Of a DNA stretch of 64,000 bases, positions 2,839 to 64,000 are shown one piece after another. This stretch comes from Magallana gigas. Taxonomy: Eukaryota. Below the pieces are notes generated by a model. That model made no database searches, was not told where the DNA came from, and was given only the letters and a program-made list of their open reading frames with translations. The stretch is from contig NC_088856.1 in NCBI RefSeq assembly GCF_963853765.1, positions 27,590,001-27,654,000 on the forward strand. The letters run 5' to 3'. Within the stretch, counting starts at the first letter, position 1, and each line of letters begins with the position of its first letter. The position numbers were made by a program, and so were the translations under genes.

Positions 2839-4158
2839 ATGAAGAAGAAAATATTCAACGACCAGTCAACTCGGGATACATATTTTGAGTCTCCACCATA
2901 TCGATGTGAGTATGTATGTATGTGTGTGTCTTTAAAAAGTATTTTTAAATTGATACAACGCATGTTTTAATTTATAATACACAAATTTAAAATGTCAAGC
3001 GTTTAATAGCATTATGTTTACGCAAAATATTATTAAAGTTTTTTCGTTTTGTTGTTTGTGTGTAAGTTTAATTTGACTGTGTAAATGTACGTATAATGAA
3101 ATAAAAACAGTTTGACGTAACCAAGCATAAAAAAAACAGGCAATCGTGTCTGACATATGTATTTTAATATTTTTTTTAAATTCTTAATGATTTCATAAGT
3201 TTTCTTGGCTAGAAAGTACATTTAAATTTAGAAACTTCAAAACCTGATGCAAAAATCATTAGCTAAAGTGTACTGTAACATCATTTGACTAATCTTATAA
3301 ATCATTCATTATGATGGCATGCTTTGACAGAATTCGATAATCTTTGCATTATCAATTTGCTTAAAAATACAAAAAAGGTTTTGATATGTAACTTGCATTA
3401 TGTCTGTAATAGTGTTCTTTAATTAATGTATCTATTGGTACACTTGTAGTTACCTCTGAATCAGACATGGGTATCATTGGATTGTCGGTCATCATTTTGA
3501 TATCAGCTTTTGCGTCATGTATTTGTTCTGCCTTCTGCTTCTGTTGTTACAAAAGGTAAGACATTTTTTTTTCTTTGAGATAAAATATTGTAGAATGACA
3601 TCAAACAAATGAAGTCTTTTACAAGTGTACAAATATCTGTGTATGATGAACGTAAACAAAGGTTTNNNNNNNNNNNNNNNNNNNNNNNNNNNNNNNNNNN
3701 NNNNNNNNNNNNNNNNNNNNNNNNNNNNNNNNNNNNNNNNNNNNNNNNNNNNNNNNNNNNNNNNNNNNNNNNNNNNNNNNNNNNNNNNNNNNNNNNNNNN
3801 NNNNNNNNNNNNNNNNNNNNNNNNNNNNNNNNNNNNNNNNNNNNNAACTATTGCTGTTTTTTCAAGGGGCTTTATACAGGCTCAAACATCAATTCAAAAG
3901 AATGATCAGCAAGAAGAGGAAACTCAGTACCAAGGTCAAAATACTAGTAATGAGATTTCTGATGAAGACCACGCTTACGAAAAACCTCGCCCACCGACGA
4001 ATGAAACTTCACAAAACCATGAATTAGAATTATCAGCGTATGAGGAGGTCAAGGAAAACCAAATTGAAGAGTGTCAGTTTCAGAAAACTGATGAAGGTGT
4101 GTATTTAACACCAGTTAATCGACAACACCCTCTTCCATCCGTTGGAGCTGGGAATTAA
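2839..4158 (+). CDS. Gene A1: spliced single-pass membrane protein with juxtamembrane Cys cluster and Tyr-motif tail (~154 aa)
   Basis: Exon 2839-2905 (MKKKIFNDQSTRDTYFESPPYR, donor GTGAGT, phase 1). Exon 3450-3555 (TSESDMGIIGLSVIILISAFASCICSAFCFCCYK, TGTAG acceptor, GTAAG donor, phase 2). Exon 3867-4158 (GFIQ...HAYEKP...SAYEEV...GVYLTPV...GAGN*). The frames join. The start codon is uncertain (2839 or internal Met 3467). Confidence 0.75.
3666..3845. other. Assembly gap (180 N) in intron 2 of A1
   Basis: N run. The paralogous position in A4 holds a (TA)n tract. Confidence 0.99.
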
Positions 4159-5470
4159 GAGTCTGCGTATACACAGGCTACGTGTCCACTATACACATGG
4201 AAAACAACAAACAGTTTTTCGCATCAGTTTATATTCTGTTGCATTTTTGTTGCTTGAAGTTTCGACAAGAAAAGAAATCAAGAAAGGATTAGTTGACTGT
4301 TTATTCACATATATATTGGAAAAAAAAATGTATACATAAATATACAATGCAGATTTTAAGGAACGCTGGAATACGTTTTTTTGAAAAGTCTTAAAATAGT
4401 TCTATTGTTGTTATGTTGTATATTGTACATAATTTGTGAGTCTATTTATGTATATTATTCTTGAATATATTTAAGAAGCTGATAAAAGTTTCATTTAAAT
4501 AAAAAAATCAAAAGGTGTATAATGTAAAACGTTTGATGTCATTAACTATATTGAGCGCTGTCAAAAGTGATACAGTAAATTATCATCGGAAGTGCTGAAC
4601 ATATATTAGCATCTTAATTTTCGTGCAAATTGGTCAAAATCTCAAAGTACAATGTTGTTGGCATTGTACGACCTAAGACTAAATTTTATAAATGGTACAA
4701 ATTTTAGTCTTTTACTTAGAAGAGATTGTTCAGCACATGTCAAACAATGTTTTGACAAGTTTAAAACTTGCATTTCAGTTTCCATTAAATTCTTTGGCTG
4801 CAAGTTAGGAGCAGAAATAGATCGTACTATAACAAAGCAGTTTGTGGCTGCAAGTTACGAGCACAGATATATCGAACTCGTAAAAGAGTATTTTTGGATT
4901 TCTGTTCTCTTTAAACGTATACACATTTTGATTGTTACGTGGATAAAACTTAACTGAAACAAGGAAGTTAACACCAATGCCAATTTGTATGTAGCGCAAG
5001 TGCAAGTTATGGCACGCCTACAATGATTTAAATCAAAAGATGATTGGTTGAGCAAATACACAGTTTCAATCATGTTAGAAAGCAGTATAGAATGCTAGTA
5101 TCATTAGATAAAAACGTAAAAATATGTTCAATCAAGAGTCAATCAAAACAAATGTATACATGTATTTTGATATACTTCAAGTTCCTTAAGTGATAATTTG
5201 TTAAATCTTAGTAGCATTTTTTTTCTTTTAACGGACTCTCGTTATTATATTGACTTTATATCTCTCTCAAGACCCACTTCTTTTTGAGAATGTTTGGTTT
5301 TAGTGGGAATCACACCTTGTGACTCACAATTGAAAGGTCTTTGATGACAGAGATTTCCTGTGTAATTTTTTGGGTAGCACGAAGTAATCATTTTTCTCAG
5401 AAATGGGAAAGTGAGAAAAAATTTTAACCAAATGAACTTCGTGAGCAGAAGAAAGTCCCAATAATTTCAG
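4150..5470 (+). repeat. Segmental duplication; paralogous copy at ~12721-14050 (3' flank of A genes)
   Basis: Long colinear match, e.g. GGCTGCAAGTTACGAGCA and GAAAGGTCTTTGATGACAGAGATTTCCTGTGTAATTTT in both. ORFs 4652 and 13165 translate to similar peptides. Confidence 0.9.
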
Positions 5471-7487
5471 AAATGCCCATCGCGTTTAAAGAATGTGATA
5501 CACGGGCGGATGCCGGTTGGGACATTGTCCAGAATCACAAGTGCAAAAAAACAACAACAAAAAACGACGACATCCTTACATCCAGACAAATCTTAAACTT
5601 CGCAGCACCGTTATGGCTTACTTTGAAAATATCAGCGAATTTAAACGTTCATAAAACAAACTGTTATTACAAAATATTTATTTAAAGTTATTTTTATCCT
5701 GATGTAAATGTAATATAAAATGAAACAGTATAGTAAATGCTACTTTGTATGACACTTACTGTGGTCCCCTGAATTGATAATCATGAGACATATGTTGATA
5801 TTTCTCCCGAATTAAGATCATTAACAAATTTCAATGTTACAAAGGCATACCCTTATTTAAATTAAACATTTAAATGATAACTAAATTCTATTTTTCTGGT
5901 AGATTCTGAAAAGTGCTGCTGCTTTGTATAGAGTTCTTCTTTTATTAGAATAAATATTAAAGAAATGAGCTCCGGTAAGGATTTATATGACCCTCGACTT
6001 ATATTTTACGTTATTATTAATTCATTCTATTGATTTCATCGAAGCAGCAGCACTTTGTAATTAATCAATATTAATATCAATTAACATTCTCTTAATTCAT
6101 ATCCAAAAGATCGTAATGATCTGTTAAGTGTATGCTCTTGTAAAACGCAGATTAAGATAGGCTCCCCGATGTCAAACACATCGAACTTGTACAGTAAACA
6201 TTCTAGAAAAGAAATAGTACACGCTCTATAAAATAATCATATGCTAAATCAAAACAAGCATAATAGATAGGATTTAATGGTGTGATAAATGTTTTTAGGT
6301 TATCTTCTGTTCATTTATAAAATGCAATTTTCCATGTTAAAACATTGATTGATCCGCCTCTCTCTACACAAAATATGCGTCAAAATTAACAGTATGACGT
6401 CACATCCACAAGTGCAACGCGATCAGTCAGTTCTTTATATTTATCATTGTTGGACTTATTTGAGTACAAAGTTGCAAGCATAGGTAATTTTGAATTTATT
6501 TTAATCTTTTCGTACCCATATCATATTATTTGCTAATTACTTTGTTTATTAGCATTTTTGACTGACGACTTGTTGTTTTGTGTGATGTCATAGTTAGTTA
6601 ACATTTCTCGCAATTTCTGGCGGCGAGACCACAACGTAAACCTTAACAGTGCTGCCTTATTAGAACCCGACACTCTTAATGAAGCATTTTGTCAATTGCT
6701 TATATGTCATAGCTAGTTAAGAGTGTTTCGGTGATATTAATAACACATGTCATTTCAAAATTGTAATAAGGTCCGCTTCGTCAGGAAATCACATAATCAT
6801 AAACAAATAATTTTTGTGAACTTCATTTTGTTTTAATTTGGATCTAATGACTAGACCACCTATATTTTTGTGTTTATTGTATGCATCCAAAGTTAGAATA
6901 CAGGTATCCAAAATCTTCATATGCATCATAATATGGTATATAAATTGTATATCTGATCATGTCTTGCATTGCAATTTTGCAAACCTGATACCAACAATTT
7001 ATTTGATTGCAAGTTTTATACTTCATAAAAAAAGATTTTTGTATAAAAAAAATTTGCGGTAATAAAATATTTTGTATATAATTTAAATTGATTTTATAAC
7101 TTATTTTATATTAAAGTAATAAATGCGTACATACTTAAAAGTAGCTGTGGTAATAGAGAAAGCAAGTATTTTTATTGATGTTGTAGTTTAATTTTTGTAT
7201 TTTTCAATGAATTATGATATTATTTGTCCATTATTCTAGGTCAATGTCTTTTTATCTAGCGTAATACTATTGAAAGAAACCACCAACAACTCCCTTTTCG
7301 CTTGGCGAAAACCGAGTGCACCAATTTAACAAGCTGCCGCATTATGAGAGTGAGTTTTACATGTGTTTTTGTTACTTGTTCTTAAAGGTCTAGTGGGTTA
7401 TAATTTTGCTCACACATATATAGTTGCATTTCAAATGAGAATTGGAAAATACAAATGTGTTCTTTACTTTATATGATTCTATTTTAG

Positions 7488-7853
7488 GTGGGTTCAATGT
7501 TTCAGCATTTTCTTTCAAATATGGTATCAATATTATACCATTACATGTGTCATCTATCTTTATCTAATTTATAATTGATTTTTGAAGAGGGCTTTGACAG
7601 GGTAAAAAGTATAACCATTAAAAATAAAAAAAAAAAGTAAGAAAGAACCGATTGCCAATGTTGTTATATTATTAGAAACCAAAAAACCCACAGTTATGAA
7701 CAACATACATGTAGCCAGCCAACTAGTAAACCTTCACAAGAAACAACTTGAAACCAATGTCACAATAATGAATCTGACAAAAAACAAAGTTATGCAAAAC
7801 CCTGCCCAACAAATCGAGCAGAGTCTGCATCGTATGAAGAGATTAAGAAATAG
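7488..7853 (+). pseudogene. Gene B1 (pseudogene): TM exon mostly deleted, tail exon with stops
   Basis: ATGGTATCAATATT at 7521 is fused directly to intron-2 sequence. The tail exon from 7588 reads R-G-L-stop. A downstream remnant frame reads HSYEQH...QETT*NQC...QSYAKPCP...ASYEEIKK*. Confidence 0.7.
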
Positions 7854-7889
7854 CGTATACAGTAATTTCATGCATATCTTTTACAATTT

Positions 7890-11701: not shown

Positions 11702-12726
11702 ATGAGCAAATATACATTGTGTAAAACTTGGAATGGTGCATGTAGTACATGTAATTATGTATGTGTGTGAATCTTGAGAAATAGAAAAAAACCGTTCTAA
11801 AACTGACACAATTCATGCTTTAAACTACTATACACAAATTGAAAATGTCATTCGTTTAATAAGACGATGATAACGAAAATACTAATAGAGTGGGTTTTTG
11901 TTTGTTTGTGTGCAAGATTATTTTGGCTATATAAATATACGTATGTTGCAGTCAAAAAAAAAGGGGTGGCGAAGCAAAGCATAAAAAATAACAGTAACTT
12001 ATGTCTGATATAATTATGTCTTTAAATGTTGATTTTGTACACAAGTTTCAATGCCAAGAACGTAAATTTACATTTTGCAACTATAAGGAATGGAGCAAAA
12101 TAGATTTGACTTCAGCATTATCAGTTGTCTAATCTTATCATTCATTCAGATTACATGTTTTTAACTCAATATGATTTACGCTTTACTAAAAAAAAATAGG
12201 CTGTAAAATGTTAATTACATTGTGTATGTAGTAATTTTCTTCAATTTATTTATCTCTTGGTACGGAAGATGCAATGGCAGATGAACTTTCCCTCATCCTA
12301 GTGTTTATCATTTTGATAACAGCTGTTGTAATATGTTTATGTACCACCATTTTTTGCTACAAAAGGTAGAACAATTTTCTTTCAGATAAAGAATGGAAAA
12401 ATGACATCAAACAAATTAAGTCTTTTACACATGCACGAGTATCCGTGTATGACTAAAGTAAAAAAAAAAGGCTCCCTTTGTTAATTCAATATTGATACTA
12501 TTAATAATAAATAACAGTATTTGTCAGGTGTAACAGATTTTAAATTAGTGTATCTACGAAGTATTTTGCTATAGGAATTTTNNNNNNNNNNNNNNNNNNN
12601 NNNNNNNNNNNNNNNNNNNNNNNNNNNNNNNNNNNNNNNNNNNNNNNNNNNNNNNNNNNNNNNNNNNNNNNNNNNNNNNNNNNNNNNNNNNNNNNNNNNN
12701 NNNNNNNNNNNNNNNNNNNNGATTAA
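11702..12726 (+). CDS. Gene A2: family member; tail exon falls in an assembly gap
   Basis: Exon 11702-11750 (MSKYTLCKTWNGACST, phase 1, GTAATT; in-frame upstream ATG at 11675). Exon ~12269-12365 (AMADELSLILVFIILITAVVICLCTTIFCYK, weak acceptor, GTAGAA donor). Sequence after the gap matches the stop and 3' UTR of A1 (ATTAAGAGTCTGC). Confidence 0.6.
12582..12720. other. Assembly gap (139 N) covering the expected exon 3 of A2
   Basis: N run flanked by intron-2 homology on the left and 3' UTR homology on the right. Confidence 0.99.
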
Positions 12727-14716
12727 GAGTCTGCCTATACAGGCTACGAGTCCACTATACACATGGAAAACAACACCAAAGAGTATTTTCCATTGGTTTA
12801 TATCCTGTCACATTTTTGTTGCTTGAAGTTTCGACAAGAAAAAAATCAAGAAAGGATTGGTTAACTGTTCACTAAAAATGTGTATTGGAAGATCAAATGT
12901 ACACATAAATATATAGTGCAGTTTAAGAAACGCTGGGATATTATTTTTTGAAAAGTCTAAAAAATAGTTTTTTTGTTGTTATGAAGTATATTGTACATAA
13001 TGTTTTGAGTATATTTAAGTCTGTTATTCTTGTATACATGTATTTAAGTAGCTGATAAAAATTCATTTTAATAAAAAATCAAAGGGTATACAATGTAAAA
13101 CGTATTATGTCATTATTATTGCATTAAGCACTGTCTATAGGGATGCATTAAATTTTCATCAGAATTGCTGAACATATATTTGCATCTTAATTTTCGTGCA
13201 AGTTCGTTAAAATCTCAAAGTACAAGGTTGTTGGCATTGTACGACCTAGGACTTAATTCTATAAATGGTATAAATTTTAGACTTTTACTTAGAAGAGATT
13301 GTTCAGCAAATGTCAAACAGTGTTTTGACAAGTTTAAAACTTGCATTTCAGTTTTCTTTGAATTCTTTAGCTGCAAGTTACGAGCAGAAATAGATTGTAC
13401 TCTTAAAAAAAAAGCTTTTGGCTGCAAGTTACGAGCAGGGATATATTGTACTCGTAAAAGGGTCTTTTTTGGATTTCTGTTCTCTTAAAACGTCCACCCA
13501 TTTTGATTGTTACGTGGATAAAACGCAACTGAAAGAATAAAGTTAACACCAATGCTAATCTGTATGTAGCGCAAGCTATGGCACGCCTACAATGATTAAA
13601 ATCAAAGATGATTGGTTGAGCAAATACACAATTTCAATCATGTTAGAAAACATTGTAGAAAGCTAGTATCATAAGATAATAACGTAAAAATCGGTTCAAT
13701 GAAGAATCCATCAAAACAAATGTATATTTTGATATACTTTAAGTTACTCAAGTGATAATTCGTTGAATCTTTGTAGCAATTTAGCTTTTGGTGGACGTTC
13801 GTTATTATGTTGGCTTTATATATCAAGACCCACTTCTTTTTGAGAATTTTTGGTTTTAGTTGGAATCACGCCTAGTGACTAACAATTGAAAGGTCTTTGA
13901 TGACAGAGATTTCCTGTGTAATTTTATGGGATGCACGAAGTAATTATTTGTTTCAGAAGTGGGAAATTGAGAAATAATTTCTACCAAATGAACTTTGTGA
14001 GCAATTGCAAGTCCCAATAAATTCAGAAACGTCCATCGCGTTTAAGGAAGGTTGGGACATTGCCCCGAATCAAAAGTGCAAAAAAAAAACAAAAACAAAA
14101 ACAAAAAACTGTATGCATCAAAAGTTTTCAATACGAGTAACCAAAGTCTTCATATGCATTATAATATCCTATATAAATTGTATATTTGATCATGTCTTCC
14201 ATTGCAATTTTGCAAACTTGATTTTAGCAATTTATTTGATTGCAGGTTTTATACTTCATAAAAAAATTTTTAATGATAATAATTTTGGTAATACAATATT
14301 TTGGATATAATCTAAAATAATTACATAACTTATTTATAGTAAAGTAATAAATACGTGCATACTTAAAAGTAGCTGTGGTAATAGAGAACGCAGGTATTTT
14401 TATTTTTGTGTTAGTTTAATTTTTGTATTTTTCAATGAATAATGATAATATTTGTCTATAATTCTAGGTCAATGTCTTTTTATCTAGCGTAATAATATTG
14501 AAAGAAACCACCAACAACTACCTTTTCGATTGGCTAAAACTGGGTGCACCAATTTTACAAGCTGCCGCATTATAAGAGTGAGCTGTACATGTGTTGTCGT
14601 TATTTGGTTTTGAAAGCTCTAGTGCGTTATAAGTTTGCTTACAAATATAAAGTAGGATTTTAAATGTTAATTGGAAAATCCAACTGTGTTCTTTATTTTA
14701 TATGATTCTATTTTAG

Positions 14717-15511
14717 ATGGGTTCTATGTTTTAGCAGTTTCAAAAAAAAAATGGTATTCATATGTTTGACATTCATTTTGATAGTAACGTTCGTGATAAT
14801 TATCGTACCTGTTACTGCTTTTGTTGTTACAAAAGGTAAGAAATTATTACTAAAAGAGACAACTATTTTTTTCACAAGTACTTTTAAAAATCTTTCGAAA
14901 GCATATATACACTGAATTAAGTAATACACGCAAGTCGTGAGGTTTAAGTGTGCATTCAAGTGTAACGAAACATTAGAGAATATGAACCCCTTTTTGGGTG
15001 TCTTATATTGTTCATGTTATACATAAAGCAATGAAATAAATGTTTGTCATGTTTATTTAGGAAAACTATTAATATATACAATATATGAATTGCATTTGCA
15101 AGGTTTAGTGTAAAATGAAGTACAATATCTCTAGGTTATTTTTTTATTTTAAGTGTCTGTCTTTAAATTGTATACCATTACCTGTATTATCTATCTTTAT
15201 CTCATTTATAATTGATTTATGAAGAGGGCTTAGACAGGTTAAAAAGTTTAACCGCCTAAAATATCGCCTTAAAGAAACAACCCATTGCCAATGTTGTTAT
15301 ATTATTAGTGACAAAAAAAACCCACAGTTATGAACAATATATCCTGCTGCCAACTAGTAAACCATCACACGAAACAACTGGAAACAAATATCACAATGAT
15401 AAATCTAACAAAGAACAAAGTTATGAACAACCCTGTCCATCACACCAACTACAACTATTGAAACCTTACAACCAAAATATCTCTAGAAATTCTTTGTATC
15501 CTCAATCTTGA
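14717..15511 (+). pseudogene. Gene B2 (probable pseudogene): frameshifted TM and tail exons
   Basis: ATG 14751 to donor 14835 is 85 nt versus 89 nt in B3/B4; a 4-nt deletion shifts the Cys cluster out of frame. The tail exon from 15225 starts RGLRQVKKFN but has a +4 shift in a poly-A run before HSYEQ...QSYEQPCP. Confidence 0.7.
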
Positions 15512-16953
15512 AGTACGAAAAACAACAAACAAAACTATAGAAAAAGAGCTTCCTTTTTCAATTCTATCATCTAACTGAGAAATGATCACTCATTAAGAAA
15601 TATTGACTTGTTTGTAGAGGGATATCTGCCTTTGAGAATCAAAAATAAGTTTTAACAATGAAATGCTTGGATTTAATTTGATAAAGAATTGTCGTTTAAT
15701 TTTGTTTCATTTTGCCTTAATGGTTACATGTAATTATCAAACCTAATTAACCGAAAAAAATATAATTTTAACAATAAAATAATTTATTTTAATTCGATAA
15801 AAACATTTTCTTTCGTCACACTTCTATTATTCAAAATGTCCGACAATTTAGAAATTTCTGTAAATATATATAAAATTTGGTATTATTGAAGGTACCCACA
15901 ATTTTCAAAAAGTATTTTGTTTAATTTTGCCTTGATGGTTAATGATCAATCATATCACATCGAACCTAATTAACCGTATTTTCAACATTTATTCTTCATT
16001 TATTATCATTTCTCTTCCGCCTTTTTAAATAAAAAACCTCTCGTTCAAAGTACTTCACATTTAACATTTTTTTTGAAAAATCTAAATGAGTGTGGGAACT
16101 GTTTTGGTTTTATAACAAAATAATATTATTGTTTCCATGATAGGTATTTAGTCAGAAAAAGCTCTTAGGGCAAAACAAACACATTTGAAAGACCCGAGGG
16201 TTAAATTGGTAATATATATAAGAACATGTATCGATGAACTATTTGCTTTAAAATTTTTCGGGCGGAGGGTTGGGGGGAGGAGGCCAAAGGTGATGGCATG
16301 ATGGGGATTTATTGTGAGGTGACAAAAGTAAATAGTAAATACATTTCATATATATGATTACATGTATACGTTAACATAATATAGACGTGATTTTTTAGAA
16401 AGCGTTAGATTAAACACTATACAGGCAAAGAATGATCTGGACGTGTGAATAAAAAGTATTTTTATATTAATAAAACGCATGCTTTAAACTATTATACACA
16501 CATTAAAAATGTCAAGCGTTTAATAACATTACGTTTACGCAAAATATTAACAAGGTTTATTTGTTGTTTGTGTGTAAGTTTAATTTGACTGTGTAAATAT
16601 ACGTATAATGCAAATAAATACAGTTTGACGGAACAAAGCATAAAAAAATAAAAGGCAGTCGTGTCTGACACGTGTTATTTGATAATTTTTTCAGTTCTTA
16701 ATGATTTCATAAGTTTTATTGCCTAGAAATATATTTAGATTCAGACACTCTAAAACCTGATGCAAAATACATTGGCCATAGCATGCCGTAATATCATTTG
16801 ACTAATCTTATTAATTTTATTTATTACTATTACATGCTTTGACAGAATTCAATCAATGCATCATGAATTTGCTTAAAATAGGCTTTGATATGTAACTTGC
16901 ATTATGTTTGTAATAGTGTCCTTTAACTTATGTATCTATTTGTACACATGTTG

Positions 16954-17068
16954 CCACTGTTAAGAAACAGACAGACTATACAGAAACATATATATCCGCA
17001 TTGTCGTTCATCATTTTGGTATCAGCTGTCGCGACATGTATTTGTTCCTCCTTCTGTTGTTACAAAAG
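16954..17068 (+). pseudogene. Gene A3 (pseudogene): orphan TM exon
   Basis: TVKKQTDYTETYISALSFIILVSAVATCICSSFCCYK followed by GTAAAA. The ancestral TAG acceptor reads TTG. No exon 1 was found upstream. Exon 3 is replaced by a CACTA-type element. Confidence 0.7.
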
Positions 17069-18445
17069 GTAAAACATTTATCTTTGAGATAAAAGATGAT
17101 AAAATGACATCAAACAAATTAAGTCTTTTACATGTGTATGATTAACTTGTTAATTATATATATATTAGACATTTACTGACAATGTACTGACATTACTGAT
17201 AAACTTAGAAAATTACTGATGTTTTTACTGACGGTACTGAAAAACTTAGAAAAGTACTGACTGTACTGATAAACTTATAGACGAACTGACACTTTTTACT
17301 GACGGTACTGAAAAACTGTACTGAGAAGTACTGATAAGTACTGATAAGTACTGACACCATTGTTTTTACTCCTGTTAGAACTTAAAAGGTGTGAAATTGT
17401 ATAAAATAATGTATCTTTCAATTATGACAAAGAATTAAACGATTATTAAACTTATTAATAACATTTTCCTTGAATGAAAATGTCAAATTTTTATGTAATT
17501 TTATAAGTGAAGGAGAAATTGAGCCTTGTTTTTTTTTTAAGAAAAAAAAGAAGAAAAGAAACTGGTGTATTTCATAATATGTATGTTGTTAGCTTCAGTT
17601 TTGATAATTATCTAGAAAAGAAAAGTCAGTAAAAAAAATGGACACTCTTTAGCTGAAGAGAAATTAACTTGATTACCCATAATAGCACCTAGTTATTAAC
17701 ATTCAATCTACCCGTATTGCACATACACGGATTTATGGGGATCTGGACACCCTCCCCTTTGCACCCTCCATGGAAAAATCTTATTTCTTAAATTGGAATA
17801 ATTAATAAATATGGCTCAGACCCCCCCCCCCCCCCCACCTCCACCCCCGGGAAACATAAACAACATGTTTATTCTTTAGAAATGATTTTGGGGTCCGTGC
17901 ATATTACATAGTACCGGTAAATTAATGCGCTGTGTTTCCGTATACTTATGATCGCGGTAAGCTTGAGCGCTTGGGACAGAGGCTGAACGTGTTTATCAGT
18001 TATTTTGTCTTTGTGAAATAATACAAATCTAGAAATGAACCCTATCCATCAACTAAAGCTGGAGGAGACTAGATTTTATCTAAACATCTGACTCAACATT
18101 GACACAAATCTAGTTACACGTGTATACCGATACACCGCTTATGTATCTTATTACATGCATTTAAACAAATGACCGTGTTTTGTAATTTGTAAAATAAAAA
18201 ATCAGTGGAGGAAACGTGTAACCTTCCTGAGTTAACGTGCATAATAACACGTGCAGATAATCTCATTGATCGTAATGATCACGTATATTTTTACTGTTTT
18301 GCCTGGTGTAATGATGCATAGAATAACATAGTCTCCATGAAATGTCTGTTGATTTTATTTAGCAGGAAGTATATTAGTTAATACATGTATCTAAATCATG
18401 TAAATCCCAATCATTGAAAGCCATTGATTATTCCCTGATAAATCA

Positions 18446-18464
18446 AGAGAGAGAGAGAGAGGGA

Positions 18465-44750: not shown

Positions 44751-44779
44751 GTGAAATAGAGCGTTTATTCAGTGCATCT

Positions 44780-46219: not shown

Positions 46220-46408
46220 TTGTCTCAGATATGTGCATTTATCTCATTAACTATTAGCCGGAAATTTTGGGTATGATCGGGTTGGGTTTTAAGGGGTGTT
46301 TTTATATTAGTTACTTCCCTTCTAGAATAATCCCTTTTCTAAAACAATCGTGGATTAGGTAAGACGTCGTTAATTAAAATAATGTTTAACCTAATTTTGC
46401 TTTTTTAT
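46220..46408 (+). repeat. Direct repeat, copy 2 (putative A2 terminal repeat)
   Basis: Colinear match to 41716-41908. Confidence 0.9.
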
Positions 46409-47546: not shown

Positions 47547-50500
47547 ATGTACAACTATACATCATATGAAGATGACTACAACTATCCAGCAGTTGAATAT
47601 AGATATACTTGTAAGTACATGTATGTCTATAGTATTTGAATCTTTAAAAAGTAAAAAAAAAAGTTTGGAAAGTTAACACATTTTGTGCTTTAAACTATTT
47701 TATACCAATTAAAAATGCAATACGTTATAAAATTACTTATTTTGTTGTTTGTGTTTAAGTATGGTTTTAATTATCTAAATCTACGTACGTGTATATTGCA
47801 ATTAAATAAATGTCGACGTTATGAACATAAAGCAATAACAGTTACTCATGTTTGAGATGTGTCTTTTAATAATAAATAATGTTCTAATTGTCCCACTGAT
47901 TTCATAACTATTATTGTAAATTTAATATTGTAAAATAGTAAAGACAAATGATAATGATACAGGTATTTTGCAGTACGTATATACTAGAAACTCTGAAATC
48001 TTTTGTAAATTAGCATTGAAGTCAGCATTCTTTAAACAAATTCTCAATAACTGTGGAATCACTAAAATTCGTGGGGGCCAATTTTCGTTAATTGCCTAAA
48101 TTCTAAAATTTAAGGTGTCGCAATTTCGTGTTTTATTTTATACATAAAAAGGAAATATTACTTAATAACCCTAGGTAAATAACTCGTGGAATATGTTTAT
48201 TCGTGGATAGTGGTACCCACGAATTCCACAAGAATTGGGCCACCAGGAAATCTAATGATTCCGCAGTAACGTTTTATAGCCACCAAAAGACAAACTGTTG
48301 ATAATCCTACTTTTAAACTTAGAATTGCCTTGAACAACCATTTACTTCATCTTATAAAAATAAAAAAAAGTTAAGACGTAACAAGAGAAAACACTTACCT
48401 CTGTAGATACTCCAAGTGTAATAGTTTTATAAAGTTTAATTTCCGTTCACTATTGAATTTCGAAAGGATCATTTTGTTTAATGCAATTTCCAAAAATAGA
48501 TTCACTAAAAAATGACGTTACAGATTGTTATTTTGGTAATGCGTATTTGTTTACTAAATACCTTAAACGGCCTATTAGATTCTAAATAGGATATTATCAT
48601 TAATTTAAGAAGAATACTATCAATACTATTTTATCATTTTTTATAATATTTAATGAAATGAATTTTCTTTAACTTCTATTACCGGTGTGGATGTTAATAT
48701 CCGTTTTAAAGTTCCGCGTGATGAATGACGTCTTTTAACAAACATGTTGAATAATGGCAAATTCCTATGCGGAATAAAATTTGGTGAATTCCAAAAAAAA
48801 ATATTTAAGGAATGAATAAAATGGTTGGGGCAGTTTACGCTTTATAAACCGCGAAGCGGTTTATAAAAAAGCGTAAACTGTTTCAAACCATTTTATATCG
48901 TATAAAACTAATAAATATTGAATTAATTGCTTATAATTTAATTTTTTACTCTTTATTGTAGATAAAAACGGTCATTTGACCTTTAAAATGACGTAAAATT
49001 GTACAATATTCAAACGTAACATCAGGCGTATTGATACGTTTTTGACGTTAGTCTTAGTATGACGTAGGCAAAATTTTTTATACGATATAAAATAATTTTG
49101 TAGTCAATCAGAAAGCGCGTTACAACCAGAATTAAATTATTAATTAATAAACTTCTGTAGAGATTTTTAGAAAGACAATGGTTTTAACATAGATGATATA
49201 TGAAGATAAATTTATTTTAGTTAATGAGAGAGACAGTTCCTGCCTACAAAGTCAATGGAGTATTTTTTTCCTAGGCAATGTTAAAAAAACCCTCGTTTGA
49301 CCCGCCTTTTTGAATAATATTACTGCAACAATACTGAAACAAAAACATTTTTAAAAAATCAAAACACTTTGTTTTATCTGACATTAAAACTATTACAAAT
49401 TGCAATTATGAAATCATCGGTGAGTAATGCATTGCAAAAAATCAAAAGTTTTACCGTATTGATTTCATTTTACTCCTTTTTATTGTAAAGGGTACAAATA
49501 TAATTTGATATCATAATTTATCAAATCTATAAACAATTTATTCCTCAATTTGAAAACGTATAAACATGTACCTTTGAGGAAAAAAATACGTATCTCAACA
49601 ACGAACATTTTTTGTTTAATTTGACCAAAAAATATCGTATGTCTTTCTACAATTATTCAAACTGTTTAACAATTTAATTTCTATAAATATATTTAAAGTA
49701 CTTAAAATCATCAAAAAGTATTTTGTTCAATTTTGCCTAAATGATTAATTATCGAAAACATTGCACCAAACATACAGGAATTTTAACAGAATTATTAATT
49801 AAAAAATAACGTTTAAGCTTCCGCCTTATCTAAAAAAAAAAGCAATGTACATTCAAAATACATGACTTTAAACAAAATAAATAAAACTTTAATGGACGTG
49901 AGAACTTAATTTGTTTCAAAATAGAATGATTATATATCGAACAGGGAAATTTCGAATACATGTACCCCGCTTATCTCGAAGTAAATTTACGGCCCCAGTC
50001 ACTAAAACATTTTAGGGCCCCGCAAGGATTTGCGGGTGCCCTATAGTAATCACTCTGTCCGTCCGTCCTTCTGTCCGTCCGTCTGTCACTCTTCCGTCCA
50101 CAAATTTTCTGTTTTTTTCTAATAACTTTTTTGATGGTTGCCCAATCAAGTTCAAATTTGGTATGGTAGTTCAGTAGGCAGAAATACATATTTTGATGCT
50201 AAGTTCGGCTCTCTATGTCTTCTGGTTTGGAGCTGGGGTGGTGGAGAAGATTCCTTAACTATGCATAAGAATGAATGGGCAAAGAGAGATAACTGCTGAG
50301 AATGTTACCATAGTATACTAGGAATGCTGTGCAATATTTGTCCTTTGGGGTTAATTAACCTTCCACAGGAAGAAAATCCTAAGCTTTATCTTTATCTGTC
50401 ACATTGAGATTAATTACTGCACTGTCTGTGTCTGCAAATGAACTTTGTTTTGAAGTTAAGGTCAATTTTGAATGAGGTTTAGTATTGTGTACATTCTTTG

Positions 50501-53500
50501 AAATATTGATTTAAAATATAATATTCATACTTTATTTTGGTAAAATACTGTACACAATGATTTATGATAACTTTTATTGAATTCTAAAATCAAGATATAT
50601 ATTAAGATTCTTTGAAATATGGATTTGAAATATAATATTCATACTTTATTTTGGTAAAATACTGTACACAATGATTTATGATAATTTTATTGAATTCTAA
50701 AATCAAGATATATATTAAGATATCCTTTTTCACTATTTTATTTTTTAATTATTTATCTTATTTTTTAATTATTTTTTTTATTTTTTTTTCTGCCTTAATG
50801 CTGTTAATTTTAACAGGTAAATAGATAATAACCCCATTCTGTCATTTCTGAAAAAACAAATCTTATTGTAAATTTAGAAGAAAAGGATGAGAGAGCAGAA
50901 CAATTAACCCCCTGGGGTTAATTATCTTGCCTGCTGCAGAAAATTTAGAGGATTATATCTATCTGTCATATGAAGATTAATGAACACCTTTGTCTGCAAC
51001 TGATGTTTGTTTTGAAGTTGAGGTCAACCCTGGGTGATACAATGTATTTGCATTCACTGACGGCTTGCATTTTATAAAACACCTGTTTAAATCTTTTTTA
51101 AATACACATTTAATTTAGTTTGTCTTTTTTAAGACATGAGGTCATCCCTGTTTTATGCAGATACAAGGTTACTATTTAAAGTTTTTGGACATTCAGGAAT
51201 TATCTTGAAATTTTAAAAATACAGTTGTTACTTAAAATTTTCATATTTTTTTTTTTTAATGTAATCAAATGAAACTCTCATTCCATGAGCTGCACCCTTA
51301 TATTTTTACCCCTCAGTTTAACACTTTAATTGTTGGATGAAAATCATATCCAACTACAAATCATGAGATCCTATATATTGCAGTTCTTTACATCTTATGC
51401 CGGGCATTTATTTTTCATCATTGTTAATATAAAGAGGATGGAATTCAAAGTTTTTTTCACTTCTGTATATTAATTGTCATAGCGGGGCCCTTCCTGACTG
51501 GTCAGTTTTCTAGTTTATCTTGAAATCAAGTGAATTAACCACCCCAATAATTACACGCCTTCAGTACACTGTCTCCACGTAATGCCGATTTTCCGGTATA
51601 TTGCACAGGTCAGTAAACCATGGTGTATTACTGAAGTTACCTATGATTTCCACGCTTTAATTGCCCCAAGCTGTTGAAACCCTTTCCTTATATAATAGGA
51701 GCAGAACATATAACTTGTCAACATTCAATCTGTATGTACATGTATACACGAGTTAAGGTCTTATTTCTTTATAAATTCAATATGCCAATTAAATATTATG
51801 CAGACATAACCGATGATTTTTCAAGCTCCAATGGCGTGCATTGAGAAAAGAATGGAAGGGGGAGGTGGTGTCTTAAAATTCCAGAAACTGCTCATTCGTC
51901 TTCATTTAATGCAGATGCAAATTTGACTATTTGGGATAAATATAATCTAAATTACTAATTTTAATTAAACGCTATTTATTAAATTGGCGGTACTTTAAGA
52001 AAAGTTTTGTCCCAAGGTATTATAATACATCTGTGAAATATGAAATTGCCTCACCAACTCAAAAATTAATTAGTTTAATTATTTGCGGACAAACAGATGT
52101 ACGAACAGGGCAAAAACTATATACTTCCGAATCTTCGATTAGGACGGGGCTATAAAAATAAGCTTAAACTTAAATTTATGTCTCTGCGCTAACTAACGAA
52201 TCGTGTACCTTTGGCAAGCGAACATGTATATCACGGGAAGGCACAACAGTGAATATTGTATCAAGTAATCAGGAACAGATCAACTATCTATTTCCACCCC
52301 ATCCCTTTTCCAAAACCAAGAAATAAGAATTCCTTTAACGCTAAAAGGGTATTTCTAAGAGAATAATTAAAAATTTTGGCAAGGTCCTAGAAATATGGAT
52401 AGAAAACTTAACCTTAAATTATGAATTGTGATTTGGGCAGTAATGAAATAATTTCTTTAAACTTATTTGGTGAAAAAATGAAATAGACAATGTGCAGATC
52501 TATTTTTAATGCCTTATAAATTGGAAATATTTACTTTAATCCTGACCAAGAATTTAAAGAATGTTTAAGCAGGGCTAAACGAATAGCATTGCCCGGCAAT
52601 GGGTACATCCATCTATAAATTGAGCAATTTTAAGGTCCCGTAAAATATCATCCATTTTTTCATAGCACGACTTCCGAAAATAAGCTTCCGAAAGATCATC
52701 ATCATAAAGATGAAGGCACAACATATAACACTGTGTCTACATCACAACGAAATGCAAAATCTACCGCATGGAATGCGAACAGGACCGGACATAATATTTA
52801 ACACTCATCATAATAACAGAAATACATGTACTATATGTAGTAATGAATACACTGTATGTAATGTGAGAAGTACATAATATATTGTTGGGTTTACCGCATA
52901 TAATGTTAGAACGACCGCATATAATGTTAGAAGACCCTCATATAATGTTCGAATCACCTCATATATAATAATTAATGAAAATAATATAGTGATTTAACTA
53001 CATCATATAATAAAAGAAATACTGTTTAAAATGGAAAATGTACACGATATAATTTAAAAAAAAATTATATAATGAATATAATACGAGATATAATGAAGAG
53101 AACACTGCGTTTAATGTTTAATCCTCATATAAGACAGTCCCGGTGTTCCCTAGAATTACATTATTTATGTAATGCCGTTTAATTTATTAACTCTTCGCAG
53201 CCTACAACAAAAATAATTATGAAATCTTCCCGTGGTTGATCTTCATTTTGATACCAACTGTTGTGACAGGTCTATGGGTTTGTTCCTGCTACTGTTGTTA
53301 CAAAAGGTAAGACATTATTCTTTCAGATAAAAAACAAATATGAAATAAAAAAAAAAAAATGTATTTCACAACAAGAAACATTTACACGTGCACAAGTACA
53401 TATTACTACTAAGTCATAAAAGTACTGACATTCCCAATTTTTACTGATTAACTTAGACATTTACTGAAAATGTGCTGACATTACTGATAAACTTAGAAAA

Positions 53501-54342
53501 GTACTGACGTTTTTACTGACGGTACTGAGAAACTTAGAAAAGTACTGACAAACTTAGACAGTACTGATAAACTTAGAGAAGTACTCACACTTTTTACTGA
53601 CGGTACTGAAAAACTTAGAGAAGTACTAACAAGCACTGATAAGTACTGACACCATTGTTTTTACTTCCGCTAGAGCTTAAAAGGTGTGAAATTGTATGAA
53701 ATAACTCAGCACTGTCTAAGTTTGTTAGTACTTTTCTAAGTTTCTGAGTACTGTCAGTAAAAAGTCAGTACTTTTCTTAGTTTATCAGTAATGTCAGGAC
53801 ATTATCTATAAATGTCTTAGTTTATCAGTAAAAATGTGAATGTCGGTACTTTTTGGACATAGTAGTGTATTAAATAAAGGCGTTGCTCGTTAATTCAATA
53901 CATGTAATGATAATATTAGCATTATACATGACTGTATACATTGCATTTGTCAGGTTTGACAGAAATAAAGAATGTATCTAAGAATTTTTTTTTTCAAGTT
54001 TTCAGTCTTTTTTGTGTTTTCTTCTCAAGTTATGTTTTTGATATTTCTGTTTGATTAAGAGGGATTAGACAGGGCCAAAAGTTAAACCAAGAGAACGATC
54101 AGCAAGAAGAAACAGCTCAGTACCAGAGTCAAAATATTGAGTTTCCTAACCAAGAAAACGCTTACGAAACACCTTGTCAACCGACCAACACATGTGAAAC
54201 TTCACAAAAACAGGAATTAGAATTGGCAGCGTATGAAGAGATCAAGGAAAACCGGTTTAAATGGCTTCAATATCAGAATATCGGTGAAGATGTGTATTTA
54301 ACACCGGTCACTCAACAAAAACCTCTTCCATCTGGGAATTAA
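47547..54342 (+). CDS. Gene A5: intact family member (150 aa) with TE-expanded introns
   Basis: Exon 47547-47610 (MYNYTSYEDDYNYPAVEYRYT, GTAAGT, phase 1; in-frame TAA just upstream; same GGATACATA-ATG context as A4). Exon 53201-53306 (YNKNNYEIFPWLIFILIPTVVTGLWVCSCYCCYK, phase 2). Exon 54060-54342 (GIRQ...NAYETP...AAYEEI...QYQNI...DVYLTPV...SGN*). The link across the 5.6-kb intron 1 is inferred from homology and phase. Confidence 0.8.
48050..48268. mobile_element. MITE with ACTGTGGAATCA...TGATTCCGCAGT inverted ends
   Basis: Terminal inverted repeats. A partial related copy lies at ~55630-55690. Confidence 0.7.
48800..49145. mobile_element. Non-autonomous element with a central hairpin (family uncertain)
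   Basis: Hairpin 48818-48894 (AAAATGGTT...TTTATAAACCGC-GAA-GCGGTTTATAAA...AACCATTTT) plus the inverted pair TTTTATATCGTATAAAA / TTTTATACGATATAAAA. Confidence 0.6.
50010..51516 (+). mobile_element. DINE-1/HINE-like Helentron-associated element
   Basis: 5' GGGCCCCGC subterminal repeat with a local inverted partner, then a (GTCC)n/(GTCT)n microsatellite. 3' GCGGGGCCC plus CTGACTGGTCAG hairpin and T-rich end. Internal duplications at 50490-50720 and 50250-50530 / 50870-51100. Confidence 0.8.
53404..53867. mobile_element. CACTA-type MITE (464 bp) in intron 2 of A5
   Basis: Ends TACTACTAAGTC... and ...GACATAGTAGTG (CACTA termini, left C changed to T). 3-bp TSD TAT at 53401-53403 and 53868-53870. 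AGTACTGA subterminal repeats. Paralogous introns lack it. Confidence 0.85.
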
Positions 54343-57028: not shown

Positions 57029-57189
57029 NNNNNNNNNNNNNNNNNNNNNNNNNNNNNNNNNNNNNNNNNNNNNNNNNNNNNNNNNNNNNNNNNNNNNNNN
57101 NNNNNNNNNNNNNNNNNNNNNNNNNNNNNNNNNNNNNNNNNNNNNNNNNNNNNNNNNNNNNNNNNNNNNNNNNNNNNNNNNNNNNNNNN
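57029..57189. other. Assembly gap (161 N)
   Basis: N run. Confidence 0.99.
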
Positions 57190-60500: not shown

Positions 60501-61999
60501 TTTTTAGTTTGTATTACTTTATTGACAGCCTTAACTTTGCTGAGTATAACATCGTGTTCTATTTTAGCACTAAACATTGTAGTCAAATTTTACTTATTAC
60601 AGAAAATTGTAAAGTATTTTGGTGGGTTGATTCGAAAAAATATAGAAATCAACATGACGATGTTTGAAGCATTTGTATTCATTTTGCTGCTTAATTTGTC
60701 TATTTCATCTAAAGGGCAAATCAATAAACAATTTGAAATTGTTCTCGACAATCCTTTAGAAAACTACCTCAAACACATGGAGATCTGTAGATAGTAAAGA
60801 TCCAAAGAAAATGTATAAAAACATTCCTTATTTTGTTTTTCAGAGGAGGCAAATTTGACTCATGTCAAGTATGGAATATTTATTTCCGTATCTGGAAAGA
60901 GATACTTAGTGGGTCTCTTTTCAAGTTCAAAACCCCACTTTGTCTGCATTATGTGTTTCTAAAGAAAATGGTATCTACCATGCATTTCAAGTCAAGTGAA
61001 CAAAGAGTCTGATATATTTTTCCGAAGAATGTTCTTGAACTAAAAGATGTGATATTTGATAAAAATGTGAACCTACAAGTCTGTACATGTATCAGTAAGG
61101 GTCATAATTTCGTTGATCAGAAAAGGCTTTATAATTATTTTAAAACTAAAACATCCTTTTTCATATTTTTATGGCCTATGAAAAGATCATTAATAGAGAT
61201 ATGTGTCTTATAGAAAGTAATGTAAAGCAAAAGGAAATTGATCAAACTTGCGATATTATTGAATTATTCCTAATGTTCAAGACTTAACCGATCTAGATTA
61301 TAAACAAATCATTTAAAAAGTTTGAAGTTTTGATTTATTTTGAAATAATTACCTTCTTAATAAGATTCATCTGTTTTAACGGTCTTTTAGCCTTGTAGTC
61401 TCTTACAGTGTACTTGCAATCAAAAGAGATTCTCTTATTTCTCATTAAAATACATGTTAATAGAAAAAAGTATGAGTAATATCATTTCTGAAAAACTAAA
61501 TAATGCACCAGAAATAATACTTTAACAATTGATAAAATGTAATTTCAGTGTATCATTCTACCTTTAATAGTACACAGGTAATAGAAATCTAGACACGTGC
61601 TGAAGAAGTGGTCAACAATCCATTTAATAACACATTAGTGAAGCATTCCATGTTCAATAGTACCCATGTACAGGTATAGAAAGTTCTAGATGTTTGGCGA
61701 GGAACTAAGGTTTTTAAAAGTCTTTCCAACACAATGCTTATTATAAGTTTTACACAAAGCATGCAAGCACAAAATATATTATATATTAAAAAGGTTGTAA
61801 ATTTTGTTTTAATACAACGAGACGTCATTTTCCCATATTTGTAAGATAATTATTTGCATCGTCAGCACTTTCATATTCCGATGTGGTTTTTTTTATTTTA
61901 AAAATAAAGATATTGTTTGAGAATATATAGAATAGAAAAATTCTCAGTGTTCGTATCAATATGCTTTCATAAATCGATAAATAAAAAAAATATCATAAA

Positions 62000-64000
62000 T
62001 AGTCGGACCTTGTATTTCTTTTCTTGTTGCCGGAGAAACTATACAGATTTTTAATATAAAGTTAATGAACAACATGAGTTTGAATTTACCAAAGCTTTAG
62101 ATTGATATCAAGAAAAAATAATATGTCCACTCAAACTAGGGCCTCTGACATGGGTCTAAATTCTTCCATCTATAGCTTTATTGTTGGATAAACAAGACTC
62201 TTGCCATTTGAACGAAGTCAGTGGCCCAATTCCTAGATCATGCTTCGTTGCCGTGAATCAAGGTTAAGGTATAATCTCACATTCTGAAAATCTGACGAAA
62301 GACAGCTTCGTTGCCTATGGCGAGATTGTGTCCAGTTAAATGTATGTTTACTTACTTCTACAACTTTTGTCACTCACAAAAATGTATATCATTTAGGAAT
62401 AAAGAACATAATAATGAACTATTTAATAATATGAAAATGGCATTCCCTGTGTATGAGTTTTAGAAAGGGTTTCCAACCTATCAACTCTCGGAAATAAGAA
62501 GTAATAAAACTGAATTCTCAAATTCATCGTGTGAATGCAATCTAATCATGTATATATTAGATAATATATCTCCTAAACAAGGACACACAAATGTTTGCAA
62601 AGTAAACATCATATTAATCTTAAATGATTATAAAATTACAAAATTGCAGGCGCTTAATTACATTGATGTTATATTGCGCATCTGGATTGGGTTGACTGAA
62701 CAAAGTCGTTTAATTGTTTATCCTATTTCTTATTTTATTATCCATTAGTAAACGTTTCGCGTTCATCAATATAATCTAGAGCAGTTATACGTTTTGAATT
62801 CGAGTATCCGAAGTCATCATATGGTATACATTGTAAATTTCATTTTGTGTTCAATTGCCATTTTAAGATTTGATTTGATTGCAAGTTTTACGTTTCATAA
62901 AAAAGATAAAAACGGATTCTTTTTTTTTTTAATTAAATGACTTTTGTTATAGATAATTTGAATTATTTACATAACTTATTTATTATGAATTAATGAATGC
63001 GTGCATATTTAAAAGATAACTGTGGGTAAATGACGCATTGCATTTTATATATGTTGCAGTTTGATATTTGTATTTCTGAATGAATTATGATATTATATGT
63101 CTATTATTCTAAACCTTTTTATCTAGCATAATAATATTGAAGAAATAAACAACGGCCTTTTTCCTTGGTTACAACTGGGTGCACAAATTTAACAATTTGC
63201 CGCATCATGACAGTAAGCTTATCATGTGTTTTGGTTTAATGATTTTGAAAGATCTAGAACTAGTTTATTTATTTATAATTTTGCTTACGAATATAAAGTA
63301 GGATTTAAAATGTGGACTTGCATAATGAAATTGTGTTCTTCACTTTATATAATCACATTTTAGGTCCCTTTGAATGTTTCAACAGTTTCTGGAGAAATGG
63401 TATTAATATTATTGATAGTAATGTTCATACTAATTGTTGTGATACTTAACGTGAGTACCTGTTGCTGCTTCTGTTGTTATGAAAGGTAAGAAATTATTAC
63501 TTCTTACTATACAGAAATAACTAGTACACGCATTACAGATGTTTGATCCACCTCTTAATAATACACAGGAAATATAGCGCGAGTTCACTATGACACCATA
63601 CGTTAAGATATATAATCATTTGCTTACGTATCTCGACAATGCTGAGAAAAACTCATGAAAATAACAGTTCAAGTTCAACGTAATTCGCTACACAGATGTG
63701 ACCTTTGTTGACGTACATCCCAGATTGCCATGTTACTCGGTTGTGACTAAAGCATCAATTCTAGGCACTTATTCCAAGCTTAAGCTAAGAGAAACAAAAC
63801 CTCAAATATGTTTGTCAATGCATTACAATGGAAGTATATATGATACTGACTTTACTACCAAACAAGTAATTATACACGTCAAACGTGAGGTTTATGTGTC
63901 CATTCAAGTGTAACGAAACAAAAGAGTTTATAAACCCCTTTGTGTGTGTCTATTATTGACTCAACATAAACATAAAGCAAAGGAATATATGTTTGCCTCG
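62000..64000 (+). repeat. Segmental duplication of ~33460-35390
   Basis: Colinear, e.g. GAAGTCAGTGGCCCAAT, CTGAAAATCTGACG(G/A)AAGACAGCTTCGTTGC and GCTTAAGCTAA(A/G)AGAAACAAAACCTCAAAT. Confidence 0.9.
63397..63485 (+). CDS. Gene B4: TM exon (partial gene; tail exon expected just beyond the window)
   Basis: MVLILLIVMFILIVVILNVSTCCCFCCYE followed by AG|GTAAG. The downstream intron matches B3 intron 2 up to the window end. Confidence 0.75.

Follow-up and report, generated by a model that had tools for sequence, protein, structure and literature searches.

How does an oyster come to carry a cluster of small membrane proteins built like vertebrate immune adaptors, and what might such proteins do? 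We addressed these questions in a 64,000-nucleotide stretch of the Pacific oyster genome (Magallana gigas; NCBI RefSeq GCF_963853765.1, contig NC_088856.1, here C4, positions 27,590,001-27,654,000, + strand), which we call the window and in whose numbering positions are given unless C4 is named. This is AT-rich animal DNA (GC about 31%), in which the original prediction had seen a hidden array of transmembrane (TM) exons encoding LAT/PAG-like proteins. Comparing sequences, we conclude that the genes of this array, which fall into types A and B, are decapitated partial duplicates of the 3′ end (the last two exons, TM and tail) of a Sema receptor gene.

Nine copies of a TM exon form a tandem array

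A six-frame motif scan of the window uncovered six exons that end in ...C.C..CCY[K/E]R followed by GTAAGA, and the three predicted cysteine-rich ends, CFCCYKR, CCCFYCYER and CSCYCCYKR, were all present, each before GTAAGA. We then searched the window by blastn with these six motif-bearing TM exons, which brought the total to nine copies of an exon of ~100 nt, all on the + strand, with pairwise E-values of 1e-5 to 1e-56. Across the whole 564-Mb genome, the exon-end motif (as a degenerate 20-mer) was restricted to C4:27,574,965-27,653,491; the three one-mismatch matches found elsewhere correspond to the control rate. Given this restriction and the low E-values, the nine same-strand copies that had been predicted are real and far beyond chance. 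The predicted intron phases hold as well: phase 1 on the 5′ side of the TM exon and phase 2 on its 3′ side.

The copies are ordered as alternating A-B tandem pairs, with A0/B0 upstream of the window followed by A1/B1, A2/B2, A3, A4/B3 and A5/B4. The array extends past both window ends, with A0/B0 at 10-15 kb before the start and the tail exon of B4 at 185-706 bases after the end. Four of the nine copies in the window are intact (A1, A4, A5 and B4), B1, B2 and A3 are pseudogenes, and B3 is truncated. The integrity of A2 cannot be judged, because its tail coding sequence (CDS) is wholly hidden in an assembly gap (12582-12720) after its TM exon; sequence restarts at 12722, aligning to the A4 stop-codon region. 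Another gap (3666-3845) lies inside A1 intron 2, with both flanks colinear with the A4 intron and the A1 tail exon beginning at 3867, and is spliced over in the RefSeq model of A1. The third gap (57029-57189) is intergenic. An isolated A-type tail fragment, interrupted by a stop, was also seen 100 kb downstream of the array (C4:27,755,490-27,755,636; L030:490-636).

The array descends from the end of a Sema-PSI receptor gene

An exhaustive phmmer search with A4 against 1.8 billion representative proteins returned only eight hits. Among them, P0009 (E 2e-9) clusters with XP_052676669.1, a "plexin-B2-like" protein of Crassostrea angulata of 679 aa, and this 679-aa protein (P0009/P0029) matches the Pfam families Sema at 35.6 bits and PSI at 24.7 bits, both above threshold. 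A profile search of 5.8 billion proteins with a 14-sequence alignment revealed no relatives outside the family, so that no tail module is known outside oysters (the named records being Crassostrea/Magallana).

In this genome, the receptor gene spans window positions -43263 to -23193 (+ strand); its exon 6 ends at -24078, and 23 kb separate the end of the gene from the window. Further receptor paralogues lie on the same chromosome at 27.45, 27.52 and 28.25-28.36 Mb. The TM exon of the receptor opens in phase 1 and closes in phase 2 (...LFYKW, then GTAAAA), with the same boundaries and phases as the A/B exons. Its last exon opens with GVRQGQKLNQKN..., compared with GFRQGFKSILKN in A4 and GLRQAKKFNQEN in B3, so that tail exons start with GVRQGQK in the receptor versus GFRQG/GLRQA in A/B copies. 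Between the A/B copies and the receptor, DNA similarity has E-values of 6e-9 to 2e-24 in the tail exon and of 4e-5 to 9e-4 at the 3′ end of the TM exon. Sema/PSI ectodomain exons are absent from A1, A4, A5 and B4, and the array holds only decayed Sema relics: one upstream of B4 (Table 1) and a second exon-1 relic at window -7380 to -7056. These relics carry frameshifts, stops and an internal deletion. Taken together, the shared boundaries and phases, the DNA similarity and the Sema relics point to the A/B genes being decapitated receptor paralogues.

The original prediction had considered that transcripts might add large upstream ectodomain exons. A1 and A4 gain none, and A4 has a stop codon before its ATG; the module itself nevertheless corresponds to the C-terminus of the 679-aa Sema-PSI receptor family. 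Besides lacking heads, the copies have three derived features. The juxtamembrane cysteines number 1-2 in receptors (LCASFLFYKW, LCVSFFCYKW) versus 3-6 in A/B copies, and the A/B tail exceeds that of the receptor, which stops at ...TTY(V/D)(E/V)VL, by ~35 aa or more. Start codons were newly gained in the copies, and their reading frame differs even between A1 and A4, which means that the N-terminal ectodomain was not conserved as a unit.

Gene models and transcripts

Table 1 Features of the array in the window. TM exon rows also give the blastn span of the copy; a slash before GTAAGA marks the exon end.
Copy	Feature	Position	Strand	blastn span	Support	Details
A1	Exon 1, coding part	2839-2905	+		Spliced model identical to XP_034305195.2	ATG 2839; donor GTGAGT, phase 1
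A1	TM exon	3450-3555	+	3397-3596	Motif scan, blastn, spliced model	…CICSAFCFCCYK R/GTAAGA, phase 2
A1	Tail exon CDS	3867-4158	+		Spliced model	Includes stop
B1	Pseudogene	7237-7862	+	7448-7536	blastn (TM remnant)	5′ untranslated region (UTR)-exon-like 7237-7352; TM remnant 7448-7536; tail pseudo-exon 7584-7862
A2	TM exon	12269-12365	+	12219-12406	blastn	Open; only 3 Cys (ICLCTTIFCYKR); donor GTAGAA
B2	Pseudogene	14465-15451	+	14677-14876	blastn (TM exon)	5′UTR-exon-like 14465-14580; TM exon 14722-14835; tail 15221-15451
A3	TM exon	16953-17068	+	16892-17109	blastn	Open frame; TG where the homologous acceptor has AG
A4	Exon 1	29205-29344	+		L001 1-140, 98.6%	ATG 29242; in-frame TAG 29239-29241; donor GTGAGT, phase 1
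A4	TM exon	29899-29995	+	29837-30036	L001 141-238, 100% identical; RefSeq P0069 identical	…CVCPCFCFCCYK R/GTAAGA
A4	Tail exon	30231-31325	+		L001 235-1332, 99.7%	Stop codon 30520-30522, then 3′UTR
B3	Truncated gene	34622-35684	+	34877-35076	blastn (TM exon)	5′UTR-exon-like 34622-34693; TM exon 34913-35035 (ATG 34947); tail exon 35555-35684
A5	Exon 1, coding part	47547-47610	+		Gene model	Tyr-rich N-terminus; donor GTAAGT, phase 1
A5	TM exon	53201-53306	+	53148-53347	Motif scan, blastn, model	…WVCSCYCCYK R/GTAAGA
A5	Tail exon CDS	54060-54342	+		Model, 150 aa	Includes stop
	Decayed Sema-receptor exon-1 relic	60654-61050	+			aa 1-45 fused to ~aa 251-350; frameshifts, stops; 2 kb upstream of B4
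B4	5′UTR-exon-like and TM exon	63114-63485	+	63327-63526	blastn (TM exon)	5′UTR-exon-like 63114-63227; TM exon 63374-63485 (ATG 63397)

A4 has both transcript and annotation support. The 1332-nt contig L001, from a public run, aligns in three blocks (1-140, 141-238 and 235-1332) to 29205-29344, 29899-29996 and 30228-31325 at 98.6-100% identity; as it lacks the introns, which are removed at GT-AG sites, the contig derives from RNA. Both predicted A4 junctions (29344/29899 and 29995/30231) are base-exact in this contig and in RefSeq XP_034305194.2 (P0069; LOC117682194), to which our A4 model is identical. The predicted A4 length of 147 aa applies from Met17, whereas the protein has 163 aa from the first ATG, which directly follows an in-frame TAG, as in RefSeq and the RNA. 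The A1 spliced model exactly matches RefSeq XP_034305195.2 (P0002; LOC117682195; 154 aa). Both predicted A5 junctions (47610/53201 and 53306/54060) are canonical GT-AG sites giving a predicted product of 150 aa, for which we found no spliced contig and no RefSeq protein. Because A1 and A4 both exist in RefSeq as 'uncharacterized proteins', the family is not as fully hidden as first proposed; for A5 and B4, no RefSeq protein was found. Among the other A copies, A2 retains 3′UTR-like sequence past its gap (12722-13117), and A3 has no tail CDS and a 3′UTR-like remnant at 20189-20787.

The B-type genes have a different structure, with a non-coding first exon, an ATG within the TM exon and a long tail exon, as seen in three spliced contigs (L013-L015). 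As predicted, B1 keeps only the 5′ part of the TM exon, which is deleted after the first codons, and its tail pseudo-exon holds many stops. A 4-nt deletion in B2 puts the helix and the Cys cluster in different frames, and its tail also has stops. The B3 tail exon ends after 43 aa with the remainder missing, which leaves a 73-aa open reading frame (ORF); 3′UTR-like sequence follows at 38164-38486. B4, by contrast, is intact: its TM exon encodes MVLILLIV…STCCCFCCYE R before GTAAGA, and its tail exon, outside the window at +64185 to +64706 (L011:185-706), completes a model of 203 aa. The B4 tail contains a 96-nt tandem repeat of 2.8 copies, so that B-type genes add a 32-aa repeat.

We checked B4 expression with reads and contigs over window 60501-66500 in three contig runs and one raw poly-A run. 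Across these four runs there were zero joints at 63227/63374 or 63485/64185, and depth over the TM exon was zero. Contigs over the tail exon were all of low depth (2-24) and colinear with intron sequence, and the strong peaks are repeats, so absence of expression is not inferable. Summed depth reached ~10,000, with many loose ends in RNA-labelled runs, at window 63501-63700 (L016:3001-3200) and at L016:4600-5600; these stretches, in B4 intron 2 and downstream of B4, are multicopy and probably transcribed repeats. In a contig from another individual (L017; window 63530 to 1279 bases past the window end), TGG replaces the TGA stop of B4 and about seven codons of the KEVYLTM region are missing, indicating that the B4 C-terminus is polymorphic.

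Full-length spliced B-type transcripts were present in four runs as contigs L013, L014, L015 and L031, the last about 88% identical to L014 in DNA. This genome holds no close counterpart of them, the best match reaching 56% protein identity, and we therefore take all four to come from other oyster taxa. Ahead of the B 5′UTR exon, L014:1-310 encodes a peptide resembling Sema exon 2 (…FHKGDYCN.VT..IP.F.IIVGLLPLQG…) and closed by a stop codon; this is either a relic exon still in the transcribed 5′UTR or a chimeric assembly.

Further records touch the array. The nr protein P0003 (LOC117685939, C. gigas, 131 aa) joins a B-like N-terminus and TM segment to an A-like tail, and no copy in this assembly exceeds 78% identity to it, which suggests copy-number or haplotype variation of the array among individuals or assemblies. 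ORFs that start in an intron and read into the tail exon (P0007, P0011, P0004, P0010 and P0061 types) were considered as TM-less isoforms. For the P0007 cluster (member P0015) and for P0061 we rejected this reading: their contigs are genome-colinear, break at a repeat and are unspliced or genomic.

Protein anatomy and constraint

The predicted anatomy, from the short N-terminus to the tyrosine-bearing tail, is borne out by sequence features and by AlphaFold2. Each intact protein has one strongly hydrophobic segment, assigned as TM (mean Kyte-Doolittle hydropathy 2.2-3.5), preceded by 0-42 polar, neutral or acidic residues in which hydropathy gives no hydrophobic signal segment. In intact copies, 4-6 Cys separate the helix from Y[K/E]R, and a basic stretch follows on the cytosolic flank. 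Tails are acidic in A proteins (15-19 D+E versus 6-7 K+R) and mildly so in B4 (30 versus 24), and their Tyr number 4-5 (A proteins) or 6 (B4). Given the family alignment, AlphaFold2 was confident only in the TM helix (predicted local distance difference test 75-88) and low elsewhere. The surviving A1, A4, A5 and B4 thus encode proteins of 150-203 aa, predicted to have the N-terminus outside, a single TM helix and a tail modelled at low confidence. The predicted A5 N-terminus (47547-47610 plus 53201-53230) is Tyr-rich and acidic, with 10 Tyr in its first 28 residues (MYNYTSYEDDYNYPAVEYRYTSYNKNNY); it resembles a tyrosine-sulfation-type sequence, a feature seen in no other copy.

Two Tyr motifs are common to the parent receptor and the A/B tails, h-x-Y-E-x-P and [S/T/A]-x-Y-E/D-E/V-V/I. 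An alignment of 14 tails from A, B and receptor sequences shows Y104-E105 without exception, and conservation of at least 90% at P107 (of YExP) and Y125 (of YEE[V/I] or YDVV). No YxN (Grb2-type) motif occurs in the A/B tails. By motif matching only, SAYEEV of A1 and A4 fits the immunoreceptor tyrosine-based inhibitory motif pattern [S/I/V/L]xYxx[I/V/L], and the receptor tail ends TTYVEV, TTYDVV and TVYESI fit the switch motif pattern TxYxx[V/I]. On the same basis, YEE[V/I]-x9-YQxI in A4 and A5 matches a relaxed immunoreceptor tyrosine-based activation motif (strict form YxxI/L-x6-12-YxxI/L); we did not adopt this last reading since the motif is unconserved, its second Tyr being lost in A1 and absent in B types.

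The pairwise ratio of non-synonymous to synonymous substitution rates (dN/dS) was 0.43-0.53 among A1, A4 and A5 and 0.43-0.60 among three B-type sequences. Comparisons with A0 gave 0.47 against A5 and 0.69-0.91 against A1 and A4. On these short sequences, such values indicate weak to moderate constraint.

What the headless proteins may do

Our best explanation as a whole, to which we give an even chance, is that the array consists of partial duplicates of the Sema receptor 3′ end that work as headless scaffolds or competitors. In this account, the 3′ end of the neighbouring gene was partially duplicated with only the TM and tail exons retained, the ectodomain exons were lost or decayed into relics, and a new first exon or an in-exon ATG provides the start. 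Juxtamembrane Cys grew from 1-2 to 3-6, and the tail was lengthened by ~35 aa or more. Typical sites of S-acylation are Cys clusters where a TM helix reaches the cytosol; SH2 domains of the Src family classically prefer pYEE[I/V] as their ligand, and pYxxP is of the Crk/Nck/Abl type. The Cys cluster may accordingly be S-acylated, keeping the protein in ordered membrane, and Src-type kinases may phosphorylate the Tyr motifs, to which SH2 proteins would bind. In that case the headless proteins would be membrane scaffolds, or competitors for the cytosolic partners of the parent receptor: a lipid-anchored docking scaffold without a ligand-binding head could act as an amplifying adaptor or as a damping competitor. 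They would thereby work like vertebrate transmembrane adaptor proteins (TRAPs) while being unrelated to them, and raft targeting, palmitoylation, Tyr phosphorylation and an immune role may all apply. A bolder version, which we hold only tentatively and regard as doubtful, is that oysters invented TRAP-type scaffolds by beheading a Sema receptor, with the palmitoylated A/B mini-proteins serving as paired docking platforms or dominant-negative competitors that tune parent phosphotyrosine signalling in hemocytes; this would be a convergent, non-vertebrate origin of adaptors.

Several observations weigh against the scaffold or competitor reading. Five of the nine copies are broken or, in the case of A2, unscorable because of the gap, and the N-terminus is unconserved between A1 and A4, even in its frame. 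The dN/dS values are only moderately below 1 on short sequences, and A0 combines values near 0.7-0.9 (against A1 and A4) with loss of the YEEV tyrosine. On the RNA side, no spliced contig was found for A5, and B4 showed no splice joint and zero TM-exon depth in the four runs.

An alternative is that the array is mostly evolutionary debris of repeated segmental duplication at the Sema-receptor locus, its short ORFs transcribed by chance and serving no selected function. Dead copies (B1, B2 and A3), the truncated B3 and an A0 without its key Tyr would all be expected of debris, as would a locus filled with Sema exon relics and transposon insertions, dN/dS up to 0.9 in some pairs, N-termini that shift frame among copies and a B4 allele that differs at the stop codon. 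Yet the A and B lineages independently retain the TM helix, the Cys cluster, YExP and YEE[V/I]; B-type sequences absent from this genome are spliced and intact, with dN/dS of 0.43-0.60; the four tails with open frames share one stop position; and the rise from 1-2 to 3-6 Cys opposes the AT-rich mutational background, which would argue for selection. We consider debris an unlikely account of the array. We think it similarly improbable that the proteins are stand-alone LAT/PAG/SCIMP-like raft adaptors for other (immune) receptors, with Sema descent a piece of history that carries no functional link. The architecture does match TRAPs point by point, the Cys cluster is new in the copies and missing from the parent receptors, the ~35 aa or more of added tail bears extra Tyr (YQxI, YLTP), and the nearest named protein-language-model clusters include SCIMP, LIME1 and GAPT (0.81-0.84, lead level only). 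Against this stand the lack of homology to any TRAP family in Pfam, the lack of a YxN motif in the tail and the fact that the two best-conserved motifs are precisely those in the parent receptor.

The TM and tail exon pairs could also be mutually exclusive alternative 3′ cassettes of the upstream receptor, giving one ectodomain several anchors and tails. The pairs share the strand of the receptor and follow it at a distance of 23-90 kb, their acceptor phase 1 fits its preceding exon, and one foreign B-type contig has the Sema exon-2-like stretch in its 5′ part, although that Sema-like ORF stops well before the B start codon. The A4 transcript, however, begins in its own first exon with an in-frame stop before the ATG, which makes the cassette arrangement unlikely; RefSeq treats A1 and A4 as separate genes, and the sole Sema-bearing relative among the 1.8 billion representative proteins has the receptor's own Cys-poor TM. 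Overall, we judge cassettes to be very improbable.

Mobile elements at the locus

Three adjacent + strand ORFs of 205, 213 and 282 aa occupy 43237-45628, in a GC-richer block (40001-48000). The third (44780-45628) matches Pfam Phage_integrase, a tyrosine recombinase family, at 33.4 bits, and the region probably represents a mobile element of DIRS or Crypton type that was inserted between B3 and A5. A short repeat family of CAGTACTT…CTAAGTTT units occurs in both orientations in the A3 and A5 loci (17222-17371, 19941-20105 and 53484-53788). The same repeat also lies about 20.3 kb upstream of the window. Public contigs break or flip at this repeat.

Significance and comparison with known families

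The two RefSeq entries were already known; new here is that the family comprises beheaded Sema-receptor paralogues with an expanded poly-Cys anchor, about half of them dead. The locus offers a concrete route to a TRAP-like architecture in a mollusc, in which the last two exons of a receptor were partially duplicated, the ectodomain disappeared, a membrane-proximal poly-Cys cluster arose and a tail with Tyr motifs grew longer. It also sets natural controls next to one another: the parental receptors, the headless copies that are still intact and the dead ones. Should the proteins prove to be acylated and phosphorylated on Tyr, the phosphotyrosine signalling that lies downstream of this expanded and uncharacterised family of Sema receptors would become accessible in an aquaculture species; if they are not, the array would still be a clean case of gene birth by decapitation with rapid pseudogenisation.

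Among known proteins, the closest are the Sema-PSI receptor (XP_052676669.1) and its paralogues. These share with the A/B genes the homologous TM and tail exons, with …YK[W/R] before and G[V/F/L]RQ… after a common boundary and phases 1 and 2, the motifs YQxQN, h-x-Y-E-x-P-R/C-P and [T/S/A]-x-Y-x-x-[V/I], and the same strand and locus. What sets the A/B genes apart is that they lack Sema, PSI and any other ectodomain, begin at start codons of their own, carry 3-6 juxtamembrane Cys instead of 1-2 and have a longer tail.

Small single-pass proteins rich in Cys and Tyr also include the CYYR1 and Shisa-like families, which the original prediction had named as a possible outcome. Pfam CYYR1 (PF10873) and Shisa (PF13908) gave no match at E<=10 for P0001-P0003. 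The Cys-rich part of these families is extracellular, whereas the oyster Cys lie at the cytosolic helix end. A parallel for the cluster itself is the Cys run right after the TM helix, followed by basic residues, in S-acylated endodomains: the Cys-rich juxtamembrane segments of the coronavirus spike endodomain and of phospholipid scramblase (CCCPCC) are heavily S-acylated. The proteins are unrelated, and S-acylation of the oyster ones is putative.

To our knowledge, LAT/PAG/SCIMP-type transmembrane adaptors have been described only in vertebrates, and our literature search found no invertebrate example and nothing on these oyster genes or their identifiers. The LAT/PAG likeness that had been predicted holds for the architecture and not for homology, as Pfam gave no LAT, PAG or LIME1 match and no homology to NTAL. 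SCIMP matched below threshold (15.9-19 bits versus a cut-off of 27) among equally weak TM-driven matches, and we rejected membership of that family as resting on a sub-threshold, non-specific match. Protein-language-model neighbours (opalin, A36R, stannin, SCIMP, LIME1 and GAPT) scored 0.81-0.85, all below 0.9, and describe the architectural class only. By these comparisons, the resemblance of the A/B proteins to LAT, PAG and SCIMP is architectural rather than a matter of family membership. With the vertebrate TRAPs (LAT, NTAL/LAT2, PAG1/Cbp, LIME1, SCIMP and GAPT), the oyster proteins share a very short ectodomain, no signal peptide, one TM helix, Cys at the cytosolic membrane boundary and a seemingly unstructured tail with several Tyr motifs, including YEE[I/V]. 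In the vertebrate TRAPs, the juxtamembrane Cys are palmitoylated and the tail motifs recruit SH2 proteins: LAT, NTAL and SCIMP carry YxN (Grb2) sites, and PAG, LIME and SCIMP a Csk site. The oyster proteins, in contrast, have a cluster of 4-6 Cys in place of CxxC, no YxN, a proposed origin by receptor decapitation and a mollusc as their host.

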